NCBI GenBank assembly: GCA_964199315.1
Contig: OZ116699.1
Span: 24,304,001-24,368,000, forward strand
Reading direction: 5' to 3'
From: Orbicella franksi
Lineage: Eukaryota
DNA length: 64,000 bases
The notes under the pieces are model-generated. The model was given only the letters and a program-made list of their open reading frames with translations, ran no database searches and was not told the DNA's origin. Shown in pieces: positions 21,960 to 64,000 of the stretch (positions are counted from its first letter, which is position 1; the number at the start of each line of letters is the position of its first letter). The position numbers and the translations under genes are program-made.

Positions 21960-21974
21960 GTTACATAAGGCAAC
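21960..21974. promoter_or_regulatory. X-box (RFX)-like element upstream of the ZU5 gene
   Basis: GTTACATAAGGCAAC is an imperfect match to GTNRCC(N0-3)RGYAAC. It is followed by CGCCATTTT and a possible non-coding-exon donor (atg|gtaaaa) near 22039. Confidence 0.3.
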
Positions 21975-25900: not shown

Positions 25901-28301
25901 GATATATTATCCATAACACAGTCACTGCAAGCAACGATAAAAGCAGCAGTAAAAAATTATTAGCATGAATAATTGAAATCTTCCCCACAATTTTTTAGTG
26001 ATAAAAAATACTTAATCAGTCTGGGATTAAGGCACTATAAAGTACGATTTACAACCTTTGTGAAAGAGATTATTTATGTATCTGCAAAATTAAAAGACTG
26101 ATAACCTGACCAGCTTAGTTGTAACAACAGTGTGGAGGTTTTTTAAAGAAAACTGGTTTTCTTTAAGAGAGTTTTTGCTCATTACTTTGGTGTTGTAATT
26201 TTCAGATTGAGACCATGGAAAACGGGTCCAAAGTTGGTTCTTTCTTGATCACAAGAGGAGGGTTATACAAACTTGTTCGGCGGATGACAAACAACAACAT
26301 GCGTTATATTGAACAAATACCTGGTTGCATTTCAAGGGAACTCCTTTTCCCTACCAGCAACGACACTAAAAACAGCAACTTCGTTACCACGTCCCTTCGA
26401 GGGCTCATGACCAAGATCGTAGAGCCTGGTAAACAGTTTGTGTTAAGAGTTGCTCTATTTGACAATTCACAACTTAAGAATCCTAACAAATGCTTTATTT
26501 CTGAAGTTTGCTCCCAGCCGCTGTCTCTACCCTTAGGCAAAACTCGATTCCTTGTGCGTGGTAGCTTTGAATCCGACAGGGATGCCGCTGACCATACCGA
26601 GGAGCGTACAGTTATGTTCACAGGCAAGACCACGTTTGTTGATTTCTATCTGCAGTTTAGGCTCAGTGATCCGACAAAGCTTCCTGATGTGATTGGCAAG
26701 ATATCGGTGCATGGAGAAGGAGATGTACAGTTCTACATCAATCTTCACAAACCAACACAGGTATTAAGAGTCTTTCTTAATATGGAATTTAACACTGTAT
26801 ATCTCATTGAGAATTTTAGTCTTAAACTAATTACGATTTACATGGATGGGACTGTCGGTAATACTGCACTATTTTGGCGTCTAGTTCAGAAAAATGATCT
26901 TCCGTCTTAAGCGGAGTCGCTTAACGAGTCCAATGTCATTTGAAGGCTTCATGTATGTCTTCTCCAAGCCAATGGATTTCAAAAAAAGTTACCTTGTATC
27001 GCTATTCAACCATAAGTGTGGAGAACTAAAGGACCTGAAAACAACAGTATGCCGAGTGAGGTAAAACAAGCGTTTGTGTGAGATAGCAACTCCTCGAATA
27101 CGTTTTTTGTTTCTACTTTTGTTGTGCTTTGAAGGAACCCTTTAGTCAAAGTGTTTTTGGATCTTTTTCATTTCCAAAGTTTATTCTGAGACGTAGTCTA
27201 TTGTTAATAAGTATAAATCTACTGGCGTTCAATCACGAATGCCGTTCTCTGATTGGCTACGCTACTCACTATCTATTCTGTGATAGATAGTGAGTAACGT
27301 AGCAGTGTGCCCTTGTTAACTAAATGACGGCCGCACCTTGGCATTTTAGAAGTTTCTGCGAAGAGGATTTAAATAAAGTTCTGAACGAATAGCAGATTTA
27401 TACTAGAACACCGATTAAATTATTCGCTCTCGATTTCTATGCGTGATAGTTGACGAGGGTTGCGCCCTCGTCAACTATCACGCGATAGAAATCTCGAGCT
27501 CATAATCTAATTGCTTAGTATTGCTTGCGTATTATTATCATTTTCACTTTCAGATAGAGGACTTAAATAATTTAGATCATGACAAGTCAAGAATACGCGT
27601 CAAAAGGAAAAAACCAAAACCGCTACTAAAGCGTCAAACTGTTGCGGAGTTCAGATCTTTAAGAGAGGACGCTATCCTCGGTGAGTAAAACTATCAACAG
27701 CTAAAAAGACACAACCCTAATTTAAACGACAATGTGTAATGCCTAATAAGCATTAGTAATCGTATAAATACAAGTGATATTTGAAAGTTCTCTCAAAATT
27801 GCAATTACCTTGCCTTGCCTTTACCTATGAGCCATTAGGCCAGTGCAATTCGCAAGAAATTTAAATATCACAAGTAGAGTAAATCCTTATTTGCTCGAGC
27901 TTTCATCTGACTACTCATTTATAAAGCGACTGAGAAAATTAGGAGCCCATGCGCATTAATTTGCACTGCAGTGCTATGAATTAGAATTAACGATAAATTG
28001 GCCTGTTCTCAGGCAGTCACCAGTGATGTTTCCCAGTCATATGATTAATTGATTATAATCTGTTTATTTTGCAGAGGAGACTGAAGTTTCGTCTTCTCCC
28101 GACACAGGTCAAACATTCCGACACTTATTTCCGTTTCTTTCCGAACCAGGTATGAATCTTTCCGAGGCGCGCGCGTCGTCTTCGAAACTAGCGCAGAGTT
28201 TCGAAAATCTGCCGGAAATTTCAAGTCATTCAAGCAAACCTTGCCGCACCAGTTCCTTTCAAACAGACGAGTCAGAGGAGGACTTGGAAGAACTCAGATG
28301 A
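22925..28301 (+). CDS. ZU5-ZU5-UPA protein (DTHD1/ankyrin/PIDD-like module), about 608 aa, no death domain; exons 22925-22941, 24617-25517, 26206-26760, 27554-27680, 28075-28301
   Basis: All junctions are GT-AG with consistent phases (2,0,0,1); total 1827 nt. ZU5 hallmarks are VSDIIQIYPKEFVF...ELVLKLP and GIQIKFPVGCV...SSPVVLIRPSKFRFTKPIKLTLPL. A beta-rich UPA-like region follows, then an acidic/Ser-rich tail. The 17-nt first exon is inferred from the phase match. Confidence 0.8.
27222..27505. repeat. Intronic palindromic/hairpin repeat (MITE-like)
   Basis: Two long hairpins: ctacgctactcactatctat-tctgtg-atagatagtgagtaacgtag (about 27259-27302) and gatttctatgcgtgatagttgacgaggg-ttgcg-ccctcgtcaactatcacgcgatagaaatc (about 27432-27494). 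Confidence 0.7.
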
Positions 28302-29800
28302 AGCTATGCACGTGCAAGATAAGAGGAAAAGGAGCGATACTGGTTACTATTAAGCTACAGCAAGTACAGAGAGGAGACGGATCAATGAAGACGTTCAAAC
28401 CGGTCATGTTTCGTCCTTGTTATTTTGGGTCTCGGGTAGAGTTTGATCCACCAGTCAGTGAAACGACATACTATTTCTCTTGGCATTGAACGCCACAAGG
28501 TTAAATATAAACAATGACTACACCTAGGAGCATACTATGTCACGTTACTTGACGCCCCTTTCTTGTAATGTAAAACCGGGTCTTTATTGCATCTCCTCCG
28601 GAATCAAACATGAAAGATCGACCGAGAAATTAGCTTGGAATTAGAGTAATTGAAAAAGAATAATTTTGCACGAAGACTGCTTCGAACTGGTAAATGACTA
28701 AATTACTTGTGCGCTCGCAGGACTTGCTGAGTGTAAGTATATCGTATCAGACTTTTAAGTGTGTACTATCGCTAACTGTAAAATAACTGAGATGCTACGC
28801 GCGCTCTCATTGGTCGATAGGTGTGCTTAGATGAGAAATTTCATGTCCCAGAAAATTGCCCAAACCCTCCTCTAAACGATAATGGTCTGTCCCTGAAGGA
28901 AATTCCGCGAGATACTTGTACTAGCCTCGCGCGTTTCGCACTCGTTTCGCTGGGTTGAGTTTCTGAGTAAATGATAGTAGCAGACACTCGGCGTAAATTT
29001 TCAGTGGGAATCTGATTGCTCCCCCATTGTTTTCTATTGGCCTACAGAACACATCGTGCGCGTGTTATTCTTGAAAAGAGAAATTTTCAAATATGCACCG
29101 CAATTAAAAGCTTTGGACTGCAATCCTTTAGAGTGTCGACTACGCAGCTTTCGTTTCGTCTGAGCGATAATTCGCGAGCTGCACATCGTTAACTGTTTGC
29201 TCTCAAAAAATGTCGGATTCGTAATCTTATCATTTAATGAATACAATTCGCACTCGTGCAGAAAGAATGAACAGTGAGCTTAGAGGATCTTGTTCGCTTA
29301 ATTAAGCTGATGAAGCTTGAAATAGTTCCATTAAAAGAACCCCAAGGCCAAACTTAATGTGCGCGTTCGAAAACCAGAATCACCGCATTACACAGAAGCA
29401 ACCCTGATTGCCCTAAAAAAAGTTAACCTCCTACTGATCACTGACCGATTTTTTTCCTCTAACTGTTAACTGCACATACGCATCGCGCAATTTATTCGTG
29501 AAAAATAAAATTCATTTGTGCGACACTTAGTCGCGCCCGTCCCTTAAATAGCAGACTGAAAACGTGCAAGACTTACTTTAGACTTACAGTCTCCGTCCAC
29601 GGTTTTGGCTCTTGATTCTTAAATCTACGCGCGCTCCGCGGTTTGTTGCGTCCTCTCCCCGCTCAGTATGCACTAGCCCAGTTTATTTGGCGCGCGCGCA
29701 TAACTGGTACTGTGACGTAGGCTGAGCTTGCGAAGTTTGCTATCAAATAACGGTTTACATAGAAAAAAAAAAGAAAGAAGAATAAAAGTGCATCAAGAAA

Positions 29801-36178: not shown

Positions 36179-37645
36179 TTAATACATTTTAACAAATTCA
36201 CTATAGTCAATCTCTCCATCTCCATCCACGTCAAGCATTTCAACTAGTTTGTCAAGGTAAAAGTTACTCATTACTTTCAACCGTTTCATTCCGTCAACGA
36301 ATTCCACCCGAGACAAACTGTCCCGGAATTGGCATTCGGGATCTAAACGTTTAAACAAATCTGAGGCGTGAATCTTGTTTTTGTCCAAATATATTTTAAG
36401 GAAATCAAACGGATCTGCCTCCTTTTTCTTGGTAACAAACAAGTCTGTCTTTTTGCATCCATGATGGACAACAAGACCTGTTCTTTTTTTCAGAACTTTT
36501 TCAAGATGAACTTCACAATCGTGATCCAACTTAATGTCTAAAATCTTCAAGACTTTCAATGCTGGAGCACCGCTCTTAAGCAACATCTCTAGTATCTTGT
36601 TGACGCCTTGACAAGCATTGAAAATCAAATTGTGGTTTAGATTCAGCACTTCCAATTTTTCGCTACCCTCGAGCCCCTTTGCGATGTTTTTAAGTCCTTC
36701 GTCCGAGAGTCGATTGTTGCTAAGATTGAGCTCTTTGATCGTTGAATTTCGTTTCAAAGACTCCCCCAACTCTGTAGTACCAATGTAATCAAATCCGTTC
36801 CAAGAAAGATCCAACTTTTCCAGCGAGTCATTATACCGCAGGCTCTTAGCAATGGCCTCAGCTCCTTTCCTTCTTATATGGTTCCAGCTGAAATTCAGTT
36901 CGAGAAGCGAATTGTTGTAAGTAAGAGCAGTTCCGAAAGAAACTCCTGAGGCTTCAGAAAATTTGTTGTTACTCAAGTTCAACCAATCCAAAGAGCTATT
37001 GTTCTCGACGCCCTCGGCCAATAGCACCGCGTCTTTGTCTCCTAGTCCGTTTCCGGACAGATCTAACCTTCTAATCACTGTGTTATTTGGCAGCGCTTCT
37101 GCTATGGCGATGATACCTTCCCTTTTGATATTGTTATTTGCCAAGTTCAGCTCAGTAAGAGCTCTGTTCTTTGACAGCACTTGTCCAATGTAAATTCCTC
37201 CCTTGGTATTGAGCTCGTTAAACGCCACGTGCAACTTTGACGTCGTCTTGTTTCTGAGGAGAACGGAGGCAATCGCTTTAGTTCCCGCTTCCTTGAGAAA
37301 ACGATGGTTAATCTTGATCTCTTCCTGACCAATCTCGTTCCCAAATCGAGACACTGGGGTGACTCCTACTGTGTCACAAATCTTAAGGTAGGTTTCTTTT
37401 TCTGAATGGGCCTCGTCATCATCATTGTTATCATCATCGGAATAGTCATCGTCTTCAAGGTCTGTATCCCAATGAGAGCTGGTAAAGGACTGCGTTTCCT
37501 CTTCCTCTTTGACCCTCTTTTCAGTTTTAAGAAGAGCAAGGGTGGAATCTACTTGCTTTATTGTGCTCGAGGCACTGGAACAGGCTGAGCGTAAGTTCTG
37601 TGTTTGATTGTTAGAATGATTATCGGTAGAATGTCGTCGTGGCAT
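36179..37645 (-). CDS. LRRC74: LRRC74-like protein (RNI-type LRR array plus C-terminal EF-hand pair), 488 aa, single coding exon
   Basis: Uninterrupted ORF with an acidic N-terminal patch and about nine 28-residue LRRs (LTELNLANNNI, IRRLDLSGNGL, LDWLNLSNNKF, LLELNFSWNHI, LEKLDLSWNGF, IKELNLSNNRL). EF-hand loop DVDGDGEIDYSE near the C-terminus. A 5' UTR acceptor (ttactttcag) lies 9 nt before the ATG. A versus B paralog cannot be resolved. Confidence 0.85.
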   Translation of the reverse strand: MPRRHSTDNHSNNQTQNLRSACSSASSTIKQVDSTLALLKTEKRVKEEEETQSFTSSHWDTDLEDDDYSDDDNNDDDEAHSEKETYLKICDTVGVTPVSRFGNEIGQEEIKINHRFLKEAGTKAIASVLLRNKTTSKLHVAFNELNTKGGIYIGQVLSKNRALTELNLANNNIKREGIIAIAEALPNNTVIRRLDLSGNGLGDKDAVLLAEGVENNSSLDWLNLSNNKFSEASGVSFGTALTYNNSLLELNFSWNHIRRKGAEAIAKSLRYNDSLEKLDLSWNGFDYIGTTELGESLKRNSTIKELNLSNNRLSDEGLKNIAKGLEGSEKLEVLNLNHNLIFNACQGVNKILEMLLKSGAPALKVLKILDIKLDHDCEVHLEKVLKKRTGLVVHHGCKKTDLFVTKKKEADPFDFLKIYLDKNKIHASDLFKRLDPECQFRDSLSRVEFVDGMKRLKVMSNFYLDKLVEMLDVDGDGEIDYSEFVKMY

Positions 37646-40052: not shown

Positions 40053-43000
40053 TTAAGTTAACGTATTTTCTTTTTGCTTTCTTCTGTGTTTCCTTGCAGT
40101 TGGTTTGTCAATACGATATCTCTTATCTTCTCCAGTGGCTTGCGCTGCCCTTGCCCCTTCCGCAGTCTTGGCCTCAACGGTGATTGGTCCGAACCCTACG
40201 GGTGAGTTAATAAGCGTCTGTCCGTCAGAGCTAGGAACTTCCTCTGTGGAGTACGATCCTTCCTGGGTAATTCCTTCGTGTCCTATAACTTCTGGATGAA
40301 TTCCGTCGAGGTCTTCATCCTCTCTGAAGTTGTGTAACCGCCTTCGGTATTGAGGTCTGTGAAGAATACGCCTTGTGTAGGTCGGGTAACCAAGTCTGAG
40401 AGGATGGCGAAAAAGAGATCTGTCTTGAAGTAAACCCGGGGATGAAAAGCTTGCAAATGAGTTCAAATCATTTCCTGGACGAGAAAACGCGTTTGAAACC
40501 AGTGGCGAGATAAAACTTGAAGGAGCTAAAGATGATGACATCATAGATGATGCCAGTGGTGATGTCATCCGCTGCGATACCGCCGGCGATGACCTTTCGG
40601 CCAAGTTGGTACCCAGGTTAGCCATGGGTGTCACCAGAGATGACGTCATATAGCGGAGTGGTGTTGAGTCCAAGGAGAGAATATTTCCCAGTGACTGAGG
40701 TCCTGCCATGCTTACCTGCTGTTGTACGCCTGACGGCTGCATGCCCACCTGTTGCTCCATGCCTACAGGCTGCATCCCTAATGACTGACGTGTAAACGGC
40801 TGCTCCTGTAATAGTTGCTGCTGAAGTTGTAGCTGACGTAACTGCAACGGTTGTGGCGGTAAGACTTGCTGAGTGAACGTTGTTTGTAATGGCTGTAGTT
40901 GCTGTAGCGATTCCAGGGTTGGTGTCAGCACCAGCTGTCGTTTGTAATTTTGAGACACGTCGTCTTGTAATAAGTCGTCCACACTGTTTGAATCTTCAGC
41001 GGCTAGAATTGGCTCAACTAGAGTTTGTCGCTTGACTTTCCTTTTGTCTTTAAAGTGCTCTTGCTGGTGTTGTTTCTTGGCTTTCTTTTCTGAGGATCCA
41101 GGGACCTTGGATCTGCTCACCACTGGAGACCGTCGCATTAACGAGGAAAGGTCGACATACCGCGCCAAGGGTTGTTGACCAATCAACGACCCCCCTGTAG
41201 AAAAGAATTATATATTACTTTTATAAGGAAATGTACTGAGATATTCATAATCGCCCAATGGTTTATTTACTGACATAAAGAACTGTGCTCAATGCCCGTA
41301 TCTCGTTTTCTTTAACGAACAATGGGCTTAAAATTGAATTGATATGCGGAAATTGTTGATTCTTTCAATCATTTAGCTGATTCTTTCAATGTTACTAGAG
41401 GAGGGATGTAAATTTTATACTCGCTTTCTCTCTCAACCCCATAACGTTTTCCTATTTCATAGTCCTCCTCGCCCTGAGTTTAATTTCATCTTCGCTTCCA
41501 CTAGCGGCTTTCGGCTTTCTATAAAGAAAACCACGGTGCTGATTGACTATCGAAGCGTATCAGCCGATCACTCATAGCTTCGCAATGTTTCCATATAGTT
41601 ATCTTGAGGAAATCTAACGTAGCCATCACTTGTTGGCAATAAATGTTCTCATAGAATATATTAGGTAATTTTGATTCCCGTCATTCGGGTCACGTGATGA
41701 ACACTTAGTAGATAATTCTCGCGCGACGATCCCTTTTGTGCACCAGTGATGACACGGTAGTCACGTGTTCCACAACAATGAAAATGTTGAAAAGCTTATC
41801 CAACCACACAACGAATGAATGGAATTGAAGGCGTTATGTTTGAGGTCAAGGTTACAGGTAAGTCTCACTCGTTTTAAGGAAAATGATAAACGCATGAGAG
41901 ACATCAACAATTAATACTGACTGGATTTACAATTTATCAAAAAATGGGGTTCTTTCCAGGAGCTATGAATTGCTTATATTTCATTTTGTAAGCTCTGACA
42001 ATATTTACATGAGTCAAAATTCAACAAAAGCTGCACTGTATATAAGTTCAGTTTCTGGCAAACATACCAAGTAATCCATTGGTAAGGGGAAGAGAACTCT
42101 GTGCGCTGTATGGCTGAGCCAATGGCGAAGGGATGTACGTTCTTCCATAACCCATCATAGCACCTCCATACTGTGTTGCTCCTAGGTAAGATGGTACCAA
42201 ACCCAGAGCACTCCCTTCTGCATTCACACCTGGTGTGCCTAACGCATTACCATAATCCAAGTCTCGCAATGAATTCAAATTTCTTTGTCTTAAGAGCGAG
42301 TTATATAGAGATGTTAGGCCATTCAACTCACTGTAGAGCCTCTGATAGCCTCGTAAGATATCAGAATTATCTCGGTGTCTTGAGGAACCTTGTGAAGGTA
42401 AAATACTTCTTGACAGACCTGACTCTTGTAGACTTTGTTGGGGGGTGAGCTGTGAGGGTAGTGCAAATAACCCTGCTGTTTGAGGACTTTGTCGGGCACC
42501 GTAAGCTCCAAGTCCTGAACCAAACAGAGCATACTGAGGTAAGGCACCATATCCGTAACTTCCGTAAGCATTTAGGCCTCCTGGAGAAGACAGCAACGAC
42601 GGTTGTACAAACTTAGGAACCGCAGAGATAAATTGACGCTTCCGAGATTTGGAGCCCCTCTTGTGATCACTTGTACGCGGAATATCCGACTTGTGTGTTC
42701 TGACTCCGGTTTCATCTTTGCTCGGTCTGGGAAACCTTTGTCGCTTTACCCCGTTGTAAAACCAGTCGTGACCGAACGGACCGAACGGTAAGTGGTATCC
42801 ACTATGGTAAAACATAGCTGGATGATGATGAATGACCGGAGGAGGAGCATAGTGCTGCGCGAGGTGAATTGCTGGGTGAAATATTGGAATCGCTGGGGTG
42901 CCAGGCTTTGCCACAACTTGAAGAGACGCTGGTTTGGCGTTGACTTTCACTCCAGCAGGGTTGGCATTCACTTCAATCTCTGCGGCTTTGTCGTCGACTT

Positions 43001-43142
43001 GAAAATGCGACGGTTCACCAGATTGAGTCACTGTTCCACCATCTTCAGGAAAAGGTCTTGGTCTAACGCGTCCATTAAAAGCGAACAAACAAAGAATACA
43101 CACTGTTACCCGAAATCCATCGCCAAAACAAAACCATATCAT
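40053..43142 (-). CDS. Secreted low-complexity polyprotein A, about 738 aa; exons 42068-43142 and 40053-41194
   Basis: Donor CTT G|gtatgt at 42068 and acceptor ttttctacag|GG GGG TCG at 41194 are both phase 1. There is a hydrophobic N-terminal segment (FRVTVCILCLFAF) and four KR|Q sites (KRQRF, KRQFI, KRQTL, KRQLV). His/Pro-, Gly/Tyr-, Gln- and Ser/Met-rich blocks follow. No Cys after the N-terminus. Confidence 0.8.
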
Positions 43143-46100
43143 GCTTGTACGTTGGTAATAAATATTGACGCCCGTTATTTTGGTTTAGAAAAGAAAAACA
43201 TGTCTATTCTTCAATAAAATGAAACCAAAACCGAAACCTTGTGGTTCACAGATACTTTGCGGTGAGATCATGAAAATGGTAAATAATAAATAACTTTAAC
43301 CACTATATCAACAAGTGGCTCAATTCTTTCGAATCATTTTCTATCATTGTTGCTATAAACGCCATATTACTAAAGCGATGGGCGTTTCTCTGCCTTAATA
43401 GTCGATAAGGTAGGTAAGACTTTGGTCGAAAATAACAATTTGATGCGAGATCAACAAGAAAGAGGAGTTAAAAACGTCGATAATACTACAAATCAAATAT
43501 GGAAAACAACAAATTCGAGTGTTTGTCTTAAATTATTCTAATTTTGTTGGACCTAACTTTAATTGAGTTCCCATGTCTTTGGGTTTGATAACAAAAAATA
43601 GGAACAGAGAAACTAGCGAAGCCGGGTGGTTTCTGTCACCCATTGGCTAAGGTTGTCGTCATGGCAATTTATTTTCTTGAGACAGATCGATAAAGGCGGA
43701 GCGCCCAATGGGGGGAAGGAAAAAGCCGACTTTCGAACGCGTAACAAAAATGAGAAAAGCGTCTGCACGGAAGGTGGAATTCTTCGACCAGACCGAAGAT
43801 TAAACCCTATTTTCTAGTGGTCTGTTTATTTCAATTATCATTTCTTCGTTAAAACGCACTTAACGTGAGCTTAACATTGACTCTAAACCGCTGATTCAGA
43901 ACGGCTGAGTTTCTTTTGAAAGCACAGCCCGTGTAATGTAAATTACTTGCAAGATTGATACCTCACTAGTAATCAATCATTTGCATCCCTACGCACCAGT
44001 CCGAGTAGTGGGTTAACTTCGGATAAAGCTGAAGCTTCAGATTCGAAACATTTTTAGTTTAATAACTCGTTTCATTTCTCGTTTGAGCCTAAATGCCTTA
44101 AATATCCCCAAACCTACGTTACTCGCGTCTATTTACATTTGAGCAGGATACCCTGCCTTAAAGCCAAGTCCACTTTAGTTTACTAGCAAAAACTGTCCGG
44201 CACGGTCATCATTCAAGCCGAATTAAGCATGTTCGGCCGACGCTGACATTGTGATATGCGATTCTTCCCGATGTGTTTCAGTTATTAGCCTAGGCGATTT
44301 ATATCTCTCTTAGTCCTTTTCATCCCGAGTGAAACATAAGGCGTCAACGATCTGCTACCAACTTCGCAGCATGTTGTGCCTGGCCCCATGGCAAACACAA
44401 GTCAGGCGCTTAATATGATCATTTCTAACCGTCTCCTCTCGTATCGCCGACGAGTTGTTTCGGAATGGGGAATCCGTGGAATTTCTCCAAGCAAACTCTT
44501 TACTGTGGGAAAGAATGAACCCTATAAAGCTAGAATATTACTACATGTCGGCTGACCTGGCCAATTGTGCCCAAGATTAATAGCAAGTGAATTGTCAAAG
44601 GTTTAAACGCCTTGTTATTCCGAAACATGTCTTACTGACCCTTCCTAAGAGCTAATAAACAGACTTAAACATTTCAAAGGTTTTTTCTTTTTTTTTTCGT
44701 GAACGCGGAAAGCAGAATCGGTTCTAGCGTACAGCACCATACTGGCAAACTGGCAGAAACTAAGGATTAAATGTCAAATATATCTTTTAGGGAAATGTTA
44801 ATCTCTAGATCGCTTTAAATGGACGTTCTTCGCGGTGAAGTAGCAAAGAGTAACGATCCCGATTCCCCAAAACTACAAAACAATTAATTTTCAAACGTGC
44901 AGTTTTTCTTACAGGGGAGGGGGCGGGGGTGGGTGGCACCATAAACAAGAAACCACGTAAATTAAGGTTATTCCTTTAATAAATTCCCCATCATGGAGGG
45001 AGTAATCAACGGAATATAGACACGGGTAAACCCCTCAAAATGTTTCATAAAGGAGAAAATTCACTGAACAAACCAGCTGGGAGCAATTATTTTCACAAAT
45101 CGTTAGTTTTATTTTGACAATTGCTTAAAACAAAATGAGTAACTTTTTTTTTTCTTCGGATAAAAATCATTTGTGAGGTAACCGTCCTTGAAGCCCATTT
45201 TCGGCTCTGGTGCAGTCTCCGACACAATAAAGCAATAAGGTGTACTACACACGTGACACATTAACGTGGGCGTCTGTCTTGTTTCATTCAAAATGTCAAC
45301 ATGTCAATCTCCGCAGGGATTTACAAAATCCCTTTCGAGTCTTTGGAATCGCGTAAAAATCATTCCATTGATAGTAGAGCATCTCTAAATATGGGGACCA
45401 CTGCTTGGCACTTTGAAGGACCCCATTCTGAAAACAAAAACAAAATACTATTGCTGGTCATACAAATTACAACAAGTCTGTACAAACATCAATCTCAGTG
45501 AACAATGGTCAGAAGTTAAAGGACCGTTTCGTAAGAGAGATGAATGTCAAAGCGTAAGTTTGTGGGGTCCTGTAACAGTTAATTAAAGTAGCATTTTTCA
45601 GTAGTTCTCGTCAAAAAACATATTCCCGTCCCACTGAAAAATGTTGTTTACAATGTTAATGTTGAAGTGGTATCCGAGATAGAATGATGGCACGTGTTCT
45701 ACTACACTTTTGGTCTCTTTCAAATGCAATACGTTTTGTTGACGCAATTTACGAACAAAACACAACATTCTCGATAACTGTCCTATACCGTTCCAATTCG
45801 CCTTTCAAAATCTCCGATAGCATTTCATTCTTTTGATATCCCCACTAAATGAAATTCAAATTTTCCATTATATGAACTGGGTAAATTGTATGGAATTTTC
45901 GTACTGTTTTTCAGCTTTTCGGTGGTTCACTGTTTGGTTTCTACTAAAATAAAGTCAAGAATAGATATTTCTGACAGGAAAACGATACGCAGCACAGAAG
46001 CACAAAGAGAAGCGATTCATTACTAATCAACCTGCACACTTCTAAACTAGACCAAAGCCACTGAAGCGATAGATTGACCTGTTCCATAAAATAACATCCA

Positions 46101-46525
46101 CGTATTTTAGAGAGAGAGAGAGAGAGAAAAAAAAAAAACAGTTTTCCGTTGAAAATAAAACAAAACAAAACAAACAAACAAACTTGAAATGAACCATTTC
46201 AAGAATAGATTATTTTCATATAGACGTTTTTAGAAAAAAATATCGACAAGGGCTGCATGAGGGACGAAAAAATCCCTCATACCTCGACCGTAAAGAGCCC
46301 GTGAATAAGTTTCAAAGCAAAATGCCGTTACTGAGCAAAGTAAATGTAACTATTGCTAGTGAATTTATTGTGATTTATGGATAACAAACGCCCGTCCTGC
46401 AATGTCGGCTTCATTTGCTACATGTACTGATTACTTATAACTATACAAAGTAGAAATATTCACATCCAAGTCTTTTTGTCGTTGCATAAAATTGTTTACC
46501 TACCAATTCGATACAGCATCGAATT

Positions 46526-48526
46526 TTATTGTCCTGGTCGCGGAATCTCTGTTTTCTTGACAATGGCTGCATTTCTTCCACTGTCAAGGGGATTTCTTGT
46601 GAGGTAGCCTCTGGTTATCTTTCTAAGCCGTCCAGGGATGAAAGAACGGGGAACAGTCGACCTAGCCTCTTCTCCACCGAGACCGCCCGCCATTGGTGAA
46701 CCCATCGATCCACCAAGACCCGCAAGACCACCAGGAAGCTCCTCAGGAGCCGGCTGTCCACCAAGACCACCTAGACCTCCAGCGTCAGAAAAGCTGTTGG
46801 CCCCCATGGGGGAACCTTCGTTCCCACCAAGGCCTGCTGCACCTCCGAGACTTGCTCCCGCAAGGCCAGCAAGGCTATCAGCACCAGGACCCATTTCTCC
46901 TCCTTGTCCGCCTTCTGAGAACGAGCTTGGGTTGAATCCCTCCCCGAAGGCTTTCGCAGAAAGATCGCCGAAAGCTTCACCTGGATTACCACCTTCCAAA
47001 GGGCTGCCATGACCAGCAGCCAAATCGCCTAATCCTGCAGGACTTGCCCCTCCGTGTTCGTTTGGATGAACAAATATTACTGAGTCACCATTGGGTCCAG
47101 AGTTAGCGTTGGAGAACATTTGACGCCTTAGCCTTGTGGAAGCTTCCTCAATGGATCTTGTACTGACTTGCTTATCTTCCTCTGCTTTTGGCGTCTCACC
47201 ACTATCTTCTTGTGAATCTCCACTTGATTCCTCTGTCGCTGTTTGCCCTGCTTCTGTATTTGCAGTAGGTTGCGTTACATCTGTTGCCTCTTTTTGCGGC
47301 TTTTCGTCCTCGTACTCTGCTTCTTTATCTCCACTACTCTGCTCAGCTTCATCCTTGACAGTCTCCGCGGAGCTCTCTTTTTTAGAGTCCACAGCCTTAG
47401 CTATCTTTGATCGCTTCTTCCATCCACCATAAGGGTGCACAATATGAGGCTGGTGAATGACAATTGGAGGACGATGATAGATTGTAGGTGGAGAGGTGAC
47501 ATGCACAGCTGGGAAGTGATTTCCAGCGTTTATGATAGGCACAGGAGGCCCAAGATGGACAGCGGGAACATGGGGACGTACATGAATGGCTGGGACATGA
47601 GATGGGACATTTATAACTGGAACATGTGGACCAATATGGACTGCAGGTACGTGAGGCCCAATATGAACCGGAGGATAATGTGGACCAACGTGAATGGGTG
47701 GAGTGTGAGGTCCTACATTCACTGTGTGGGGAAATGGATGCCAACCAAACCACTGACGTTTGACTTTCTGTGCTACGATTTCGCGTTTTGATTTCCCTTT
47801 ATGCTTATGAGATTCACTCTCGTCTCTTTCAGAATCATCATCACTATCATCATCGTCCTCTTCTGCATTTTCAGGTATTGTGGAGCGTCCAAAGTAACCG
47901 GGTCCCCCAGCAAACCCACCAAAGCCTCCATAGCCTCCATAGCCTCCATAGCCTCCAAACCCACCATATCCGCCAAAGCCTGCGGGATATTGAAAGTGTG
48001 GTTGATGGAAAACAATTGGTGGTTGATGATATACTGTCGATGGCGACATAACGTGCACCGGCGGACCGGTGAGCGCATTAACGGCGTGAACGGGCGGCGT
48101 CATATGAACAAAAGGCACATGTGGCCTGACGTGTAGAAGGGGTGCGTTTGTTCCATAGTGAAGACTTGGAACTCGAGGACTAAGATGAACAGCGGGCACA
48201 TGTGGTCCAATGTGAACCGGAGGTGCGTTTGGTCCAATATTCACGGGCGGACTATGCGGGCCCAACACTGCCGTGTGCTCGTATGGATGAAAACCTTGTA
48301 AATGAGGGTAAGCAATAACTTGAAGCTTTGAAGGTTTGGCTTGAACTTTTACTCCTTCGGGATCAGCATTCACAACCAACTCCGGCGGTTTTTCATGAAC
48401 AGTGTAACGAACGGCATTTTTCCTTGGGCTTCGTTTACTTTTTGCACCTTTCGTTAAAACGCCGGTTGAAAAACATAACAATACTACCCCTAGCAGACAT
48501 AGCCATAATCCCCGAAAGGCCGCCAT
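46526..48526 (-). CDS. Secreted His/Pro/Val- and Gly-rich polyprotein B, 666 aa, single coding exon
   Basis: ATG at 48526 gives MAAFRGLWLCLLGVVLLCFSTGVLT, a classical signal peptide. It has two GPHVPAVHI-type nonapeptide arrays, a GGY/GGF tract, acidic spacers and a Gly/Ala/Leu-rich block. Sites KR|QWFG and RR|QMFS. Confidence 0.88.
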   Translation of the reverse strand: MAAFRGLWLCLLGVVLLCFSTGVLTKGAKSKRSPRKNAVRYTVHEKPPELVVNADPEGVKVQAKPSKLQVIAYPHLQGFHPYEHTAVLGPHSPPVNIGPNAPPVHIGPHVPAVHLSPRVPSLHYGTNAPLLHVRPHVPFVHMTPPVHAVNALTGPPVHVMSPSTVYHQPPIVFHQPHFQYPAGFGGYGGFGGYGGYGGYGGFGGFAGGPGYFGRSTIPENAEEDDDDSDDDSERDESESHKHKGKSKREIVAQKVKRQWFGWHPFPHTVNVGPHTPPIHVGPHYPPVHIGPHVPAVHIGPHVPVINVPSHVPAIHVRPHVPAVHLGPPVPIINAGNHFPAVHVTSPPTIYHRPPIVIHQPHIVHPYGGWKKRSKIAKAVDSKKESSAETVKDEAEQSSGDKEAEYEDEKPQKEATDVTQPTANTEAGQTATEESSGDSQEDSGETPKAEEDKQVSTRSIEEASTRLRRQMFSNANSGPNGDSVIFVHPNEHGGASPAGLGDLAAGHGSPLEGGNPGEAFGDLSAKAFGEGFNPSSFSEGGQGGEMGPGADSLAGLAGASLGGAAGLGGNEGSPMGANSFSDAGGLGGLGGQPAPEELPGGLAGLGGSMGSPMAGGLGGEEARSTVPRSFIPGRLRKITRGYLTRNPLDSGRNAAIVKKTEIPRPGQ

Positions 48527-50001
48527 ATCGGGGAAAAGTAAACTTGTAAACAAATACGGCCTTGCAGATTCTGTTTAAGCGCAATAAGTCAAAACACAAG
48601 AGATCTGTCGATGGTCTTAGTGGTCAAACCGAGATTACTTCACTCCCAGGGAATTTTTTGCTATGATTTAATCTTTTATCATCTCATCGCACGTGGCAAT
48701 TAGTTTTCACGGATCAATAGCAGTTTATGGCAGCGTCACATCATACAATAAAACCACCGGCGGTTATTTTCAAATAGCAGGTTTATTTAGGAATATGCTA
48801 TTCTTACTGGAAGAATGGTGTTCACGCTAATCAACGAACAAAAAATAGATTAATAAATTTTTCACAGGACGTTTTCCCAGATTGACTTCCGTGTAACTAC
48901 GAGTGTAAAAACCAGGTTAATTACACCAAAAACATAGAATGTTCACGCTTTTTATCTGGCCAGTAGTAAATTGGTTAACATCCTGGCAAGTGATAACTTT
49001 CATTAAAGACGACAGTGACAGATTTATAGATCTCTTCCACTCTCCGCGATGTGCGTTAAAATAATTAAAAGTTGTCCAACCTTATCTCCTAATACGTCTC
49101 AAACAAAATCTGCTGATAAAACTCTGTGCTCGTGCAAGTTAACCTAGACATTGAACTAACATCAATAGCTTCTTGCATGGTTCATTATCCACAAACAATT
49201 GAAGACCAAACAATTCAATTTCGTGTTGATGTTTTTCTTTTCCGAGTTGTTGTGACTACTGAAGCGAATTTCTGTGGAGAATAGCAAAACTGGAAACGAT
49301 ATCGTTCATTACAAATAGAAAATACGTCCACACTTTTAAACGAACAAAGTTAACAACCAAGGTCACCTTGTATTTCGTTCCGAGCACGAAATAACGGCAA
49401 ACACCGAGTAATAATATTAAAAAAAAAAAAAACACAAGAAAAACGAATTAAAAAAGGCAAAGTTGTCACCACAAAATTTATGTACCAAACATTAGAGCTA
49501 AAATCAACGAAATTGCTTCTCTTAGAAACATAATGCAGGAATATCTTAACAGTAATTGGTCTTCTAATTTCCAGATTACAAAACAAAGAAATAACACAAG
49601 GATAGGCACAGTCGCTTGTGAAACATACCTGTCGCTTCAAAACGATTTCACAAAATGACCGTTTTAAATACATTTCTTAAATCAGCAAACATCACATAAA
49701 GGCAAATTATCATAATTGTTTTTTTATTGGTTTTCTGTGAAAGTTTAGACGAATCGCGATAAATACAAGACATAAAGGGACAAACAATAATACACAGGTA
49801 CCAACAACCATTAAATTTTAAATCTTCTATTGCGAGAAACAAAGTTCTTCCCGGTGAATTGCTTTAGTAAGGGGAACACAATTGAAAGGATTAAGTGTCC
49901 AAACTGTTTGTTTTTAAAAGAAGAAAACATTGAACTGTAGAACCCGATTGAACAGAAGACAATCATCTTGGAGACAGTTAGCTACTGCCCCCTACTCTTG
50001 A

Positions 50002-59249: not shown

Positions 59250-62200
59250 CTAGCCACGATTGGCTGAGCCATTCGCGTGCTGCGTGGAGTGGTGTTCCCT
59301 TACAGGAACGTTGGACCTTGACGTTTCCACATTAACATGCACCGATGGTTTATCCTCTTCTGGTTCAGGAAACAAGCTGGGTTGGGCTGGAATCGGTGCG
59401 ATATTAGGAACCGGTGCGATATTAGGAACTGGCATAGGAATAACTGGTGGAAGCATGGGTGCTAACGGTGGTGGGGCCTGTTGCGGCTCTGGTGTGGGTT
59501 CTTGCAGTGCTGGAGGTTCTACCACGGGTGGAACTGCCATAGGGGGTGCGAAAGGAAGTATTGGAAACATTCGTGGAGCTAAAAGAAGTGGGTTCCCCTG
59601 AGGAAGCGGTGCAGCGGGCAAAGGTAAATTTCTCAAAAAGGCCCTATTGATTGCAGGCAGAGGTAGAATAGCTGGTCCAGTTGAAGGTAGGTCTGATAGT
59701 GGGATATTGGTTGCACCCTCTCGTTCTAGTGTATCCAGTTGTGGTCCAGCTATACCACTAGGTGGACGAAATAAAGGCTCACTGGTCACTCCAGGTTCCT
59801 GTGCCAACGGGGGAGCTGTCTCTGCTGGACTGTCTTGAAGTATAGCTTGTGCACCTAAATCTGAAGGAAGCGTGCCTTCTAAGGGGTTGGCGGCTCCTTT
59901 AAGCGGCAGAGCTCCAACTCCAGTAGGACTGTCAAGTCGTATTCCTCCGAGCTTTGGTCTCTTTCTTCCAGCAGCTCCACCTGCAACTAGGTTTGAAATC
60001 GGATCTGTGAAGACTTCAACGGGCTTGTTAAGGTTGTTACCCAAACCAAACAAGTTCTCCTCGCGTGGTTTTTTTAAGGGTTCTGGGACGAACTTTGGAC
60101 CTCGTCTTCTTTCAATAACGCCGCCTCCAAGAAGATCAAACTGCCTTTTAAATTTCTTTGTTTCGTGATTTTTTCCAGTTGCCAGATGAGATCTTGGCAT
60201 GTTAGTTTCAAGTTCATGACTGTGAAACTTTCTTTCTGGGTTTGGCACGAGTGATTTAGCCGTTTGTACATTTATGCTCACGTGAGGACGTTGAAATGTA
60301 TTAATTGGGCTAACAGAGGATTCTTGAGGTTGAGTGGTTAACACCGAACCTTGCTGATTTTCCTCAGTTTGGGCCAGGTATGGTTGAGAAGCCTCTTGGT
60401 CGTTTGTTTGCGTCAAGGAGGCTTGCGGAAGGTTCATTTGTGTTAGCTGTGCACCGGCATCCTGTTGAAAGGCTTGAATGGGCTGTATTGAAGCCTGTTC
60501 TTGTTGAGGTTCACTGATACTTTGCAAAGACTGTGTGGGCAGAATTTGTTGTTCCTGTTGACCTCCTAGATAATTATATAGCTGACGTTTCCAAGTACGC
60601 TTGTCTTTTCTACCCGCTTGAATGCGATTTTCTTTTATGATTTTCCCTTTTGTGGACTGTGGAACAGTTGATCTTCCATTTTCCTTACTAACGCTACCAG
60701 TCACAGCTGTCTGCCCTAGTGAACTAAGAAGAGGAACGGTTCCAAACAATTGGCGTCTCGATTTTCGCTCTGGTGTCTGTTCCTTATGATGGCCAAAGCT
60801 CTTTCCACGATCATTATTTGTAGATATCAGAGATTTCGCTGTCTGAACACTAATGCTCACTTTCGGTTGTGTTTTGTGTTCTAGAGGTAGCGTAAGTGTT
60901 TGAAACGGTTGAATTTGCTGCTGTTGCATAGGTTGTACAAATGCAAGTGGCTGCTCCTGTTGCGGTTGCGGTTGCTCTTGCTCTTGCTCTTGCTCTTGTT
61001 GTTGTTCAAGCGATTCAGATTGAGGTTGTGGTAGCATGGAAACCTGCTGGACACCTTGTTCGTTTTCTTCTTGGTTTTCACCCGTCAGGAATTGAGTATT
61101 TTGAATAGGATTGCCTTGAATTGTATTTGATCCTTCGTTAAATGGAACCGTAAACTGCCTTTTTACTGTAGTTCTAATCTTTTTCTTAGACGTAGTGCCT
61201 GAAATATCATGTTTCTTTCTGGCTACATCGACCTTAACAGATACGCGAGGTCTTTGGTCTCCGAGCAGAGTACCTGTGTTGGCGACAGTTTCTGGTTCAT
61301 TCACATCGGGCTCATAGTCTTCAGGTTCTTGCTCAAGTTGGTGAAGTTGCGGCATGCTGCGTTTCAAAGAATTAGTTTTGATAGTGCCAGCTTTCCGTTT
61401 ATCATTTGATCTTTTAGATGCTTCCACTTGAACGGAAACATGTGGGCGTTCATAATCAATCTGGCTTACACCTGCCTGAGAGGGCACTGCATCTGAAGGT
61501 AGTTCTTGTGCCTGTTGCTGTTGAAGTGTTGCAGGATTTGAATTAATAGCTGCCGTTGATAACTGATCTAGTTGAGGTTCCTCTTGAACGTGGATAGGAG
61601 ACTGTGAGAAACTACCTTGTGCTGGTTCATCGGATTGTAGTGGTTCTTGATCGTTGATCGTTGCAATGGGTTCCTGAGCCTGTTCGAAAGGCTGTGCAGG
61701 AGGTGCCTGTACACCGAATACTTGACGTTTACTGATCAAATCATGCGAGCCTTCTTCATCCGAGCGCTTAGACGCCTCAACATTGACAGAAACGCGGGGA
61801 GTGTGCACTGAGCTAGGCAAATATTCAAGGGCCTGACCTTGATTGATTGCCGGGAAAGGTAACCCTTCATGCGGTAGTTCCGACAGGCCGTAAATTTGTC
61901 TCCTTTCCTTTTTGATCGGTTCGTTTTGGCTCATTAGTTTATTCTTCTTTTTGGCAGTTTCTACGTGGACTGACACACGGGGTCGCTCATTTTTTGAAGG
62001 GACCTGTGAAAGTAGAGGTGGACTGACAACTGGAAGGGGAATCATGTGCGGAAGCTGTTCCATTCCATATACTTGTCTTTTTGATTTCGAGTTCTCCTTT
62101 GCTTCAAGTTTTTCAACAAAGCTGGGCAACCTCCGCTTTACGCTTGTAGACGATAAAGGTCCGTGACGTTTTCTTCCTGGGAATGCAGACTTTCTCTTGC

Positions 62201-64000
62201 TTACATCCACATTTACTGAAACTCGGGGTCTTTGATTGACAGCTGGTTGAAGAGCCAATGGATACGGCTGAACGGCCAACGGTGATTGCGGTACTGCGTA
62301 GAATTGGCGTTTCTTTGCATTTTCCTTTTGTTTCATTTCTGAGGATTGGCCGAGTTTGCTTCTTAGACCAGTCTGCCTCTTGTCACCCATTTTTGGAATT
62401 TTGTATTTTCTTTGTCGCTGTAGCTCTTCTAATAACATGCCATTAGCCTTGATTCTATGATTTACAGGTAAGGTGTTGAACGCTGGCATCAAAATGCCAT
62501 TCTGCTTGAAAGTCTGCGGGAGAACTTGCATAGCTGGAAATCGTGTTAACAGTGAGATGCTTTGGCGCTTGTTGTGGTCTTTTTCCACCGCTGATTTTTT
62601 TGTAGTTTGCACGTTGATAGATACACGGGGATTGTTGTTGCTTGGCATCGGGGCAGCTCCGTTGTAAGGAATAGGAATTCCATAGGCGGGGATTAAACCT
62701 TGTGTTGAAGCGACAAACTGTCGTTTATGGAGTGTGTTTTTTACCTTTTTAGAATGTTTCTTTGGCACCGTTGATTTTGCCGCGACATTGACATTAATGG
62801 TAGTATGTTTTGGTTGTTCCTCTTCAGTTTGTATTGCTTGCTGGGGAACTGATTGCTCAGACACTGGGAGAACTGAAGCTCCCGGAAGGCCACTAGAGAT
62901 CATACCTTGAAAAGGAACTGCAACTTGTGGTTGGAAAGGTGCCTGCAAAGGTGCCTGCATAGGTGCCTGCAAGGGTGCCTGCAAAGGTGCCTGCAAAGGT
63001 TGTTGTATTGGTGCTCGCAATGGTACATTACCTCCACGAAAAGCAAGTTGCTGTGCTTGAGCCGGTATCATCATTGGTTGGCCTTGAGATGGTGATATTT
63101 GCTGAACTGAATTTTGTTGTAGCTCCTGCCTTTGACCAACCATTTCCGGATACTGTTGCTGCTGGGCAGCCTCGTTCTGACCTTGGAGCTGCTCGTTATC
63201 GTTTGACGCAGCTCCCTCCTCACGTGGTGCTTCTTCGCTTGTAGCAACAAATTGATTCTCTGGTGCATTTGAAAAATCGGGGTTAACTTGGTTTTGGTTA
63301 ATTTCCTGACCATTCTCTCCACCTCCTATAAGTTCGTCCCTTTTATCACCAGTTTTATGCTCCTCAAGATGCTTAGTATAACCTACTTTTGGAGACCTCC
63401 TTTCTTTTGTCATTGAAGGTATCCCATTCTTCTTTGCTGTCTCTACGTTAATGTTGATTCGAGGAGAGTTCCGATGGAAAGGGAACCCTTGTACACCATA
63501 ATTTAAAGCTGTGGGCAAGGTATAGTGACTTGTTAGTGCTGAATGCGGTAAGTAATTATATATTTGTCGTTTGAAAATACGTGGTCGGGAAAGAACATCT
63601 TGCTTGTTCTCCATTTTAGTGGCTTTGGGTATATGTGATTTTGATGCTTGTACGTCTACGTGGACTTTAGGTTTGTGATCGCTGTGATAAAGAGGATATC
63701 CAAGGAAGTTACGATAAAGTGCACTTAAGTAAGACGCCCATGGGTTAAGCGTCGGTGACTCACTGCCATCGTCTTCTGGTAATGTGCTAAATAGGTTGTG
63801 GATGGGTTGTGTAGGGAGATGAAATAAGGGAAGCGCTTCAGGGTAACTTGCATCGTCGGGTTCAGTTTCCTGAGGATGTGGCAAAGGTGGAAAGAAAAAA
63901 CGTGGCAGAGGTGAGTAAGGCGAGTACGGAAGAAAGTTATTCATTATCCTTGCTCCTTCTAATCCATGTAATCCCAGGGGAATGCCAGCAGAAATAGGTG
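59250..64000 (-). CDS. Giant low-complexity polyprotein C, more than 1580 aa, open at the window edge (N-terminus outside the window)
   Basis: The 1564-codon ORF continues without a stop to base 64000 (...PISAGIPLGLHGLEGARI-MNNF). It has 12 [KR]R|Q sites, 12 copies of a P-x-V-x-[VI]-x-V-[EQD]-x-x-[KR]-type motif, and Pro/Gln-rich module bodies. No Cys seen. Confidence 0.9.
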   Translation of the reverse strand, partial: PISAGIPLGLHGLEGARIMNNFLPYSPYSPLPRFFFPPLPHPQETEPDDASYPEALPLFHLPTQPIHNLFSTLPEDDGSESPTLNPWASYLSALYRNFLGYPLYHSDHKPKVHVDVQASKSHIPKATKMENKQDVLSRPRIFKRQIYNYLPHSALTSHYTLPTALNYGVQGFPFHRNSPRININVETAKKNGIPSMTKERRSPKVGYTKHLEEHKTGDKRDELIGGGENGQEINQNQVNPDFSNAPENQFVATSEEAPREEGAASNDNEQLQGQNEAAQQQQYPEMVGQRQELQQNSVQQISPSQGQPMMIPAQAQQLAFRGGNVPLRAPIQQPLQAPLQAPLQAPMQAPLQAPFQPQVAVPFQGMISSGLPGASVLPVSEQSVPQQAIQTEEEQPKHTTINVNVAAKSTVPKKHSKKVKNTLHKRQFVASTQGLIPAYGIPIPYNGAAPMPSNNNPRVSINVQTTKKSAVEKDHNKRQSISLLTRFPAMQVLPQTFKQNGILMPAFNTLPVNHRIKANGMLLEELQRQRKYKIPKMGDKRQTGLRSKLGQSSEMKQKENAKKRQFYAVPQSPLAVQPYPLALQPAVNQRPRVSVNVDVSKRKSAFPGRKRHGPLSSTSVKRRLPSFVEKLEAKENSKSKRQVYGMEQLPHMIPLPVVSPPLLSQVPSKNERPRVSVHVETAKKKNKLMSQNEPIKKERRQIYGLSELPHEGLPFPAINQGQALEYLPSSVHTPRVSVNVEASKRSDEEGSHDLISKRQVFGVQAPPAQPFEQAQEPIATINDQEPLQSDEPAQGSFSQSPIHVQEEPQLDQLSTAAINSNPATLQQQQAQELPSDAVPSQAGVSQIDYERPHVSVQVEASKRSNDKRKAGTIKTNSLKRSMPQLHQLEQEPEDYEPDVNEPETVANTGTLLGDQRPRVSVKVDVARKKHDISGTTSKKKIRTTVKRQFTVPFNEGSNTIQGNPIQNTQFLTGENQEENEQGVQQVSMLPQPQSESLEQQQEQEQEQEQPQPQQEQPLAFVQPMQQQQIQPFQTLTLPLEHKTQPKVSISVQTAKSLISTNNDRGKSFGHHKEQTPERKSRRQLFGTVPLLSSLGQTAVTGSVSKENGRSTVPQSTKGKIIKENRIQAGRKDKRTWKRQLYNYLGGQQEQQILPTQSLQSISEPQQEQASIQPIQAFQQDAGAQLTQMNLPQASLTQTNDQEASQPYLAQTEENQQGSVLTTQPQESSVSPINTFQRPHVSINVQTAKSLVPNPERKFHSHELETNMPRSHLATGKNHETKKFKRQFDLLGGGVIERRRGPKFVPEPLKKPREENLFGLGNNLNKPVEVFTDPISNLVAGGAAGRKRPKLGGIRLDSPTGVGALPLKGAANPLEGTLPSDLGAQAILQDSPAETAPPLAQEPGVTSEPLFRPPSGIAGPQLDTLEREGATNIPLSDLPSTGPAILPLPAINRAFLRNLPLPAAPLPQGNPLLLAPRMFPILPFAPPMAVPPVVEPPALQEPTPEPQQAPPPLAPMLPPVIPMPVPNIAPVPNIAPIPAQPSLFPEPEEDKPSVHVNVETSRSNVPVREHHSTQHANGSANRG

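Follow-up and report, generated by a model that had tools for sequence, protein, structure and literature searches.

A near-invariant His/Pro/Val repeat domain in a predicted secreted protein of Orbicella franksi and its possible role in a pH-switched matrix material

Why would a 110-residue repeat domain be kept without one amino-acid change between lineages that are saturated at synonymous sites, and yet have no predicted fold? This striking combination is found in gene B, which lies on the minus strand of a 64,000-nt stretch of the Orbicella franksi genome (GenBank assembly GCA_964199315.1, contig OZ116699.1, positions 24,304,001 to 24,368,000). The whole stretch is called the window here, and coordinates are window coordinates. 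From its N-terminus, the encoded protein B comprises a signal peptide, a basic piece, a strand cassette, His/Pro/Val domain 1, a Gly/Tyr/Phe block, spacer 1, module 2 with His/Pro/Val domain 2, spacer 2 and module 3. We asked what the domain is, how it has evolved, and what kind of protein it may serve. A preceding reading of the window from its sequence only had described duplicated arrays of His-rich nonapeptides, placed them in a β-solenoid or β-arc repeat with an outward His ladder, and proposed that the acidic linkers neutralise protonated His in acidic granules and are cut away on maturation.

A duplicated domain under strong protein-level constraint

All of the nonapeptides quoted in that reading are present, and they lie in one minus-strand open reading frame (ORF); the span that it had marked, 47410-48330, codes for residues 66-373. 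The first residue of array 1 is 89 (48262) and that of array 2 is 272 (47713), and both arrays end in YH.PPIV.HQPH. The flanks are also as described, with a (GGY/GGF)n block and then EEDDDDSDDDSE following array 1, and a Glu/Asp/Ser/Thr-rich stretch following array 2. The 9-residue period is real. When the autocorrelation of residues is compared with 2000 shuffles, lags of 9, 18 and 27 stand out (z = 5.7, 3.9 and 5.2 in array 1; z = 7.0, 6.2 and 7.7 in array 2), and no other lag does. At the DNA level, Tandem Repeats Finder (TRF) detects inside the arrays only a 2.5-copy remnant of a 27-nt repeat. Because the DNA retains no more than this trace, the repeat is old and kept at the protein level, and not a recent slippage array.

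The proposed duplication holds as well. Domains 1 and 2 align end to end with 58% identity and one gap (E 8e-36), and unit k of array 1 pairs with unit k of array 2 better than shuffled orders do (permutation P = 5e-5). The end-to-end alignment and the collinear units argue against independent expansions of the two arrays; the evolving unit is a domain of fixed length. This domain has ~103 residues in ~11 non-equivalent 9-residue units, with the consensus G-P-H-V-P-[A/P]-[V/I]-[H/N]-[V/I]. Position 8 of the unit alternates between His and Asn, with one Asp in 128 cells, and Pro accounts for 22-24% of the domain, or two Pro per unit. The source genome (497 Mb) contains two copies of the domain, both in gene B. 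A weak genomic match at locus L007 on contig C9 was rejected as a paralog, being a satellite-like repeat.

The two domains have changed very little at the protein level. Between the window and an ortholog from another species (locus L003), domain 2 is identical at 110 of 110 residues, with a proportion of synonymous differences (pS) of 0.70, which is saturated, and a proportion of nonsynonymous differences (pN) of 0. The spacer segments of the same pair share 42-54% of their amino acids (pS 0.86-0.92, pN 0.31-0.37). Against the sea anemone Actinostola, identity is 95.5% in domain 2 (5 of 110 positions differ; pS 0.74, pN 0.028), 90% in domain 1 (pS 0.81, pN 0.065), and 43-48% in the spacers and tail (pS 0.84-0.95, pN 0.37-0.41). 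Over the orthologs, domain 2 is 88-100% and domain 1 87-90% identical, compared with 18-54% for the spacers. Judged from these comparisons, the domain is under near-absolute purifying selection, and the spacers evolve about ten times faster. Since synonymous sites are saturated, the conservation acts on the protein, and a constraint at the DNA level is excluded as its cause. The His positions, on which the earlier proposal turned, are conserved: averaged over the 19 His of domain 2, conservation is 98% in seven orthologous rows of this domain, the window's included, and among these orthologs every residue type is kept. Between domains 1 and 2, which are ancient paralogs, Pro (75%) and His (68%) are the best-kept types. 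Low-complexity Pro/His-rich repeat proteins normally drift fast.

Relatives of protein B are few. Nine matches were obtained among 5.8 billion clustered proteins, and eight when the search was seeded from domain 2 alone. An exhaustive HMMER scan of 1.84 billion representatives returned 35 matches at E<=1e-3, about 12 of which are true relatives with the same architecture; the others, among them the low-scoring P0036, P0039 and P0042-P0044, were rejected as unrelated simple repeats. The named relatives come only from the sea anemones Actinostola sp. and Nematostella vectensis ('uncharacterized protein LOC5512467', XP_048578595), and further ones from coral-associated metagenome assemblies. As far as relatives were found, protein B thus seems limited to hexacorallian-type cnidarians. 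A Pfam-A search with the whole 666-residue protein matched no family (E<=1), and a profile search of the PDB gave a single, chance-level match, to the disordered C-terminal nonapeptide repeats of Spt5 (E 0.14). A feature search of the ESM Atlas with domain 2 yielded nothing usable, and a homolog search among short proteins (61-194 residues) gave no match. The literature that we searched, on the motif, the Nematostella gene, nematocyst and matrisome proteomes, adhesion, spirocysts and coral His/Pro-rich proteins, does not describe the family. The His/Pro/Val domain is therefore new in that it is absent from Pfam, the PDB and this literature. His-switched repeat proteins are an already known kind of biomaterial component.

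Charge, processing sites and predicted structure

The domains carry almost no charge other than that of His. Domain 2 has 19 His, no Asp or Glu and 2 Arg, and domain 1 has 15 His, 1 Glu and 2 Arg; the composition is alike in all orthologs. His is the dominant titratable residue of the repeat region, as it is in His-switch biomaterial proteins. In all 8 orthologs the calculated net charge of a domain falls from about +16 to +20 at pH 5 to about +1 to +2 at pH 8.1. Domains with essentially no fixed charge would provide the physical basis of a pH switch, as calculated and not as measured. The part assigned to the acidic linkers did not survive the comparison of orthologs. The net charge of spacer 1 is -6 in this species only and +1 to +10 in the 7 others, and that of spacer 2 ranges from -16 to +9. 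As spacer acidity varies, neutralisation of protonated His cannot be the conserved mechanism.

Protein B shows the pattern of a convertase-processed polyprotein: behind a presumed signal peptide, conserved dibasic sites separate conserved modules from variable spacers. KR followed by Gln, and an aromatic residue followed by Gly-(Lys)-Arg, are the grammar of convertase cleavage, pyroglutamate formation and amidation. In the full-length orthologs, RR or KR stands a few residues ahead of a conserved YTVHE. R214-S215 is invariant, and R257-Q258 and R468-Q469 are invariant in 8 of 8 orthologs. Because these invariant basic sites bound the spacers, excision of the spacers on maturation is plausible. 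Spacer 1 has a pN of 0.31-0.40, and spacer 2 varies among orthologs in length (34-123 residues) and in sequence (18-43% amino-acid identity). The Gly/Tyr/Phe block is found in all orthologs with a length of 14-68 residues, and R214, S215 and I217 at its border are invariant. In module 3, R468, Q469 and G480-P488 are invariant, and the net charge is negative in 8 of 8 orthologs (-5 to -21). Past residue 18, which falls inside the presumed signal peptide, protein B has no Cys.

AlphaFold2 (AF2) did not predict a fold for the arrays. For residues 36-375 (14 alignment rows), the mean predicted local distance difference test score (pLDDT) was 35.2 with no strands in the arrays, and for domain 2 (16 rows, including the paralogous domain) it was 37.7 with no secondary structure; the prediction is limited by these shallow alignments. 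The strand cassette forms four short strands in the low-confidence model. The β-solenoid with a His ladder is thus unsupported. Overall, the sequence-only reading is partly supported: the duplication, the conservation of His and the charge property agree with it and excision of the spacers is plausible, whereas the role of spacer acidity and the β-solenoid find no support. Two Pro in every nine residues and the lack of a predicted fold make an extended chain probable, polyproline-II-like or in short β-arcs, which would become ordered only on assembly. Three traits of the domain, its constant length, its non-equivalent units and its near-invariance, argue for something more specific than a loose condensate.

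Gene B and its neighbours

The ORF of gene B spans 46526-48553, with the first ATG at 48526, 666 codons and a TAA stop codon at 46526-46528. RNA contigs of runs X10, X2, X3 and X7, which come from four studies, are unbroken from 46504 to 48650, 48574, 48560 and 48539, respectively. The intron that follows has the donor TTG/GTAGGT and the acceptor TTTTCAG/, and it starts 22 nt past the stop codon. As the contigs are unbroken and the first splice lies beyond the stop codon, the coding sequence (CDS) is contained in one exon and the 3' untranslated region (3'UTR) is spliced. The stretch of gene B was found in 20 public runs from 10 studies at 0.97-1.00 of the sampled words; 11 of the 20 are recorded as RNA, and several are labelled 'coral metagenome'. 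Contigs of this kind show the presence of a transcript and not its expression level. Gene B is a real, transcribed gene.

Two further observations concern the gene itself. A TATA-like element, GATAAAAG (48673-48695, minus strand), lies ~30 nt upstream of 48650, the outermost position reached by an RNA contig, and an E-box, CACGTG, lies just upstream of it at 48690-48695; together they make a plausible core promoter of gene B. At 47314 the window has A and 4 of 4 RNA runs have G, which changes codon 405 in spacer 2 from TAC (Tyr) to CAC (His). His at this codon is also found in the 89%-identical relative P0001. The mismatch probably reflects an allele carried by the individual that was assembled, or else an error of the assembly, and it does not count as evidence of editing. 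The features of gene B and its neighbours are collected in Table 1.

Table 1. Features of gene B and of the neighbouring genes, in window coordinates
Feature	Position	Strand	Basis
CDS of gene B, complete, no intron	46526..48526	minus	ORF list; start and end match full-length ortholog P0002
First mRNA exon: 5'UTR, entire CDS and 22 nt of 3'UTR	46504..48650	minus	RNA contigs
3'UTR intron, GT..AG	45428..46503	minus	Joint 45427/46504 in 4/4 RNA runs; next exon from 45427 downward
Predicted signal peptide, ~residues 1-22; short basic piece ending K31-R32 next	48461..48526	minus	By eye: hydrophobic N-terminus in all full-length orthologs
N-terminal strand cassette, residues 41-74, YTVHEKPPELVVNA..GVKVQAKP..LQVIAYP	48305..48406	minus	Invariant columns V43-V59
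His/Pro/Val domain 1, residues 79-181, 9-residue units, end YHQPPIVFHQPH	47984..48292	minus	Period z 5.7; paralogy to domain 2
Gly/Tyr/Phe block, residues 182-214, aromatic-Gly-Arg end ahead of Ser215	47885..47983	minus	TRF 9/18/27-nt array 47911-47981
Spacer 1, residues 215-257: STIP start, EEDDDDSDDDSE inside, KVKR end	47756..47884	minus	Net charge, pN
Module 2, residues 258-369: Gln258, WFGW, His/Pro/Val domain 2, end YHRPPIVIHQPHIVHPYGGW	47420..47755	minus	Ortholog identity
Spacer 2, residues 370-468: KKR start, Glu/Asp/Ser/Thr-rich, RLRR end	47123..47419	minus	Ortholog comparison
Module 3, residues 469-666: Gln469, GDSVIFVHP strand, Gly/Leu/Ser-rich acidic region, RSTVP/RSFIP/IPRP tail	46529..47122	minus	Invariant columns
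Gene D	40056-41186	minus	
Gene A	42051-43142	minus	
Gene C	59253-63944	minus	

The gene models of the relatives differ in places. The Actinostola model QZH41_003850 (962 residues; P0003) merges parts of the three genes B, A and D. In Actinostola DNA (L008, 20882-28316), B has one complete ORF to itself, signal peptide included, at 20882-22543, A lies at 25347-26433 and D at 27300-28316. Nematostella isoform X2 (P0008) passes from the strand cassette directly to the end of domain 1 and so skips the domain. In another species, the predicted proteins P0029 and P0030 break between the Gly/Tyr block and spacer 1. The skipped domain and these breaks suggest an intron or alternative splicing around domain 1 and the Gly/Tyr block in some lineages, unlike the single exon of the window.

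Genes A, C and D share several features with gene B. The strand cassette is common to proteins B and A (BLASTP E 1e-4), and a strand motif is common to B, C and D. The motifs [KR]S.[IV]P and [KR]RQ followed by a hydrophobic residue are far more frequent than expected in B and C (P<0.001 for each); A and D have one copy of each motif, a modest excess in A (P about 0.02) and a borderline one in D (P 0.04-0.07). [KR]S.[IV]P may mark a site of processing or attachment that the cluster has in common. None of the four proteins has Cys outside the N-terminal signal region. The gene order B-A-D is collinear in Actinostola, and the order C-B is kept at locus L003. Taken together, the shared motifs and cassette, the lack of Cys and the conserved gene order suggest that C-B-A-D is a single conserved cluster whose genes encode the components of one material. 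Complete His/Pro/Val domains are found only in B among the four. In protein A, residues ~83-120, past the strand cassette, form a remnant of about two units (PAIPIFHPAIHL..PPPVIHHHP) followed by VKRQ, which looks like a decayed or truncated copy of the end of B's domain. Elsewhere in the window, 36179-37645 (minus strand) is a single ORF for a 488-residue leucine-rich-repeat protein with an EF-hand-like C-terminal end, and the plus-strand ORFs at 24807-25607 and 26215-26910 presumably resemble ZU5/UPA-type death-domain-adaptor sequences.

What protein B may be

Proteins of other animals and of plants offer several comparisons. In acid, the squid beak His-rich proteins (HBPs) and Nereis Nvjp-1 stay soluble and extended, and they self-associate near neutral or seawater pH. 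The repeats of HBPs carry no charged residue but His, whose deprotonation sets off the association, and Nvjp-1 goes from a coil at pH 5 to a β-rich form at seawater pH and fibrillises with Zn (PMC9999432). Like these, protein B is predicted to be secreted, has His as practically the only titratable residue of its repeats and shows the same calculated charge behaviour, and a Gly/aromatic block adjoins domain 1. The repeats themselves differ: HBPs and Nvjp-1 are built of Gly/His/Ala/Tyr pentapeptides or GGH motifs, whereas those of protein B are of Pro/His/Val with a period of 9, a fixed length and near-invariance. Pfam and HMMER scans detected no homology to HBPs or Nvjp-1. Short Gly/aromatic repeats such as GHGxY and GGH are absent from the domain, and Gly/Tyr/Phe is limited to a block of its own, the length of which varies. 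The (VHLPPP)8 peptide of maize γ-zein forms an amphipathic, self-interacting structure (PMC4097401). Several units of protein B read PPVHI or PPIHV and thus resemble the (PPPVHL)8 repeat of γ-zein in combining Pro, Val, His and aliphatic residues. However, γ-zein is a plant endoplasmic reticulum storage protein with a hexapeptide repeat that polymerises through Cys, and protein B has a nonapeptide repeat and no Cys; the likeness is one of analogy, not homology.

Two animal systems combine His-rich and acidic parts. Spinalin is a secreted His-rich Hydra protein with an acidic part, located in the nematocyst spines and operculum (PMC4195985), and it is reported to have no ortholog outside Hydra, none having been identified in Nematostella (PMC4195985; PMC9205923). 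It is Gly/His-rich and reportedly restricted to Hydra, whereas the domain of protein B is rich in Pro, His and Val; the two are likened here by description and not by direct sequence comparison. The cement of the sandcastle worm consists of His/Gly/Tyr-rich basic proteins (Pc-1/2/4/5) and the Ser/Asp-rich acidic Pc-3, which are stored in granules and set on release (PMC9999432). Protein B likewise has basic, Gly/Tyr and acidic parts, but in one precursor. Its acidic parts vary among orthologs, nothing points to phosphoserine or Dopa in it, and its sequence is unrelated to those of the cement proteins.

The explanation that we prefer, tentatively, is that protein B is a convertase-processed precursor of a pH-switched, self-associating matrix material that is made together with A, C and D. 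A proprotein convertase would cut at KR and RR in the regulated secretory pathway, and the variable spacers would be discarded. This would release module 1, comprising the strand cassette, domain 1 and the Gly/Tyr/Phe block with its amidation-type aromatic-Gly-Arg end; module 2, from Gln258 to Trp369, whose N-terminal Gln would be able to cyclise; and the acidic, Gly-rich module 3, starting at Gln469. In acidic vesicles the His/Pro/Val domains would be polycationic and soluble (calculated charge about +20 at pH 5). At the pH of seawater, with hardly any charge left and with much Val, Ile and Pro, they would self-associate. The chain would gain order on assembly, possibly with Zn or Cu bridges between His of different chains; additional contacts would come from the strand cassette and the Gly/Tyr/Phe block. 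Proteins A, C and D, which have the same motif grammar, are likely co-components. The material could be a part of the cnidocyst, an adhesive, or a surface or mesogleal matrix.

Several points weigh against this explanation. In proteins of pH-switched biomaterials, it is typically the composition that is preserved, while the sequence changes quickly. A run of 110 almost unchanging residues is easier to reconcile with a precise fold, a lattice or a specific partner than with a loose condensate. Since NCBI's Nematostella isoform X2 lacks domain 1, this domain may not be required. The robust-coral-like orthologs P0006 and P0007 have no basic site directly past domain 2. In addition, an AF2 model without structure neither supports nor excludes an order induced by assembly.

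A precise fold could be a true β-solenoid or β-roll with two units per turn, as in RTX proteins, carrying metal-binding ladders of His and Asn. The strict period of 9, the occupation of position 8 by His or Asn, and the non-equivalent units and fixed domain length expected of a fold are in its favour. The unit can also be divided into a six-residue turn (G-P-H-V-P-A) and a three-residue strand (V-H-I), which parallels the RTX unit. Nevertheless, we consider this fold improbable. The consensus GGxGxDxUx, the Asp ligands and a confident β-roll, which characterise RTX repeats, are all absent from protein B, as is an Asp- or Gly-rich turn; the arrays have no strands at a pLDDT of 35-38; two Pro per unit remove many backbone hydrogen-bond donors; and the PDB yielded only the chance-level Spt5 match. 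Alternatively, the modules could be soluble effectors, such as antimicrobial or metal-sequestering peptides resembling histatin or arminin, or signalling ligands cut from a polyprotein. The cleavage grammar is that of neuropeptide and host-defence precursors, and the modules are cationic at low pH with pro-pieces that are sometimes acidic. Yet host-defence peptides usually evolve fast, and here the nonsynonymous divergence (dN) is about 0. The modules are longer than 100 residues, hydrophobic and uncharged at seawater pH, and gene B sits within a conserved cluster with very large low-complexity secreted proteins, so that such a role would be a surprise.

A narrower version of our preferred explanation makes protein B a structural component of the cnidocyst, of the nematocyst barbs or shaft or of the hexacorallian-specific spirocyst, as the anthozoan counterpart of spinalin. 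All relatives found are hexacorallian-type sequences, the presumed signal peptide is followed by a short piece with KR or RR at its end, and His-rich and Gly/Tyr-rich parts are combined. Moreover, with no spinalin ortholog reported outside Hydra, the role of spinalin is vacant there, including in Nematostella (PMC4195985; PMC9205923). On the other hand, mature protein B has no Cys, and capsule-wall proteins polymerise through Cys-rich domains (PMC4863159). We found no expression or proteomic link to the cnidocyst. The 'spinalin-like' Nematostella barb gene v1g243188 (PMC9205923) shows no sign of being gene B, as its published primers translate to nothing in P0008; this is a weak test, since the primers may fall in the UTR or in the part that isoform X2 skips. 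On balance a cnidocyst role is rather unlikely, and it is clearly more probable than the solenoid or the effectors. The least probable is that protein B belongs to the coral skeletal organic matrix and binds calcium carbonate through its acidic runs. The Asp/Ser run EEDDDDSDDDSE of this species and the RNA runs labelled coral would agree with this role. However, we disfavour it because domains almost identical to those of the window occur in the skeleton-less Actinostola and Nematostella and the acidic run is peculiar to this species; no long Asp/Glu regions are conserved.

The preferred explanation, a convertase-processed precursor of a pH-switched material, has a bolder extension, to which we give a small chance. 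In this extension, the domain would be a new assembly unit, in which eleven non-equivalent nonapeptides adopt a defined and possibly metal-templated architecture, such as a β-roll-like or polyproline-II lattice, only within the polymer. The polymer would be a hexacorallian-specific hard or adhesive structure, such as the spirocyst tubules or the nematocyst barbs, and would take the role of spinalin. An architecture that exists only in the polymer would explain the histone-like conservation of a seemingly low-complexity sequence.

If the His/Pro/Val domain is a pH- or metal-switched assembly unit, it would provide a new sequence-defined module for protein-based materials. It would also give a handle on the conserved four-gene cluster C-B-A-D, which probably makes a major secreted material of anthozoans, and the counterpart of Hydra spinalin that anthozoans lack so far might thereby be identified. 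All of this can be tested directly in Nematostella, on the ortholog LOC5512467.

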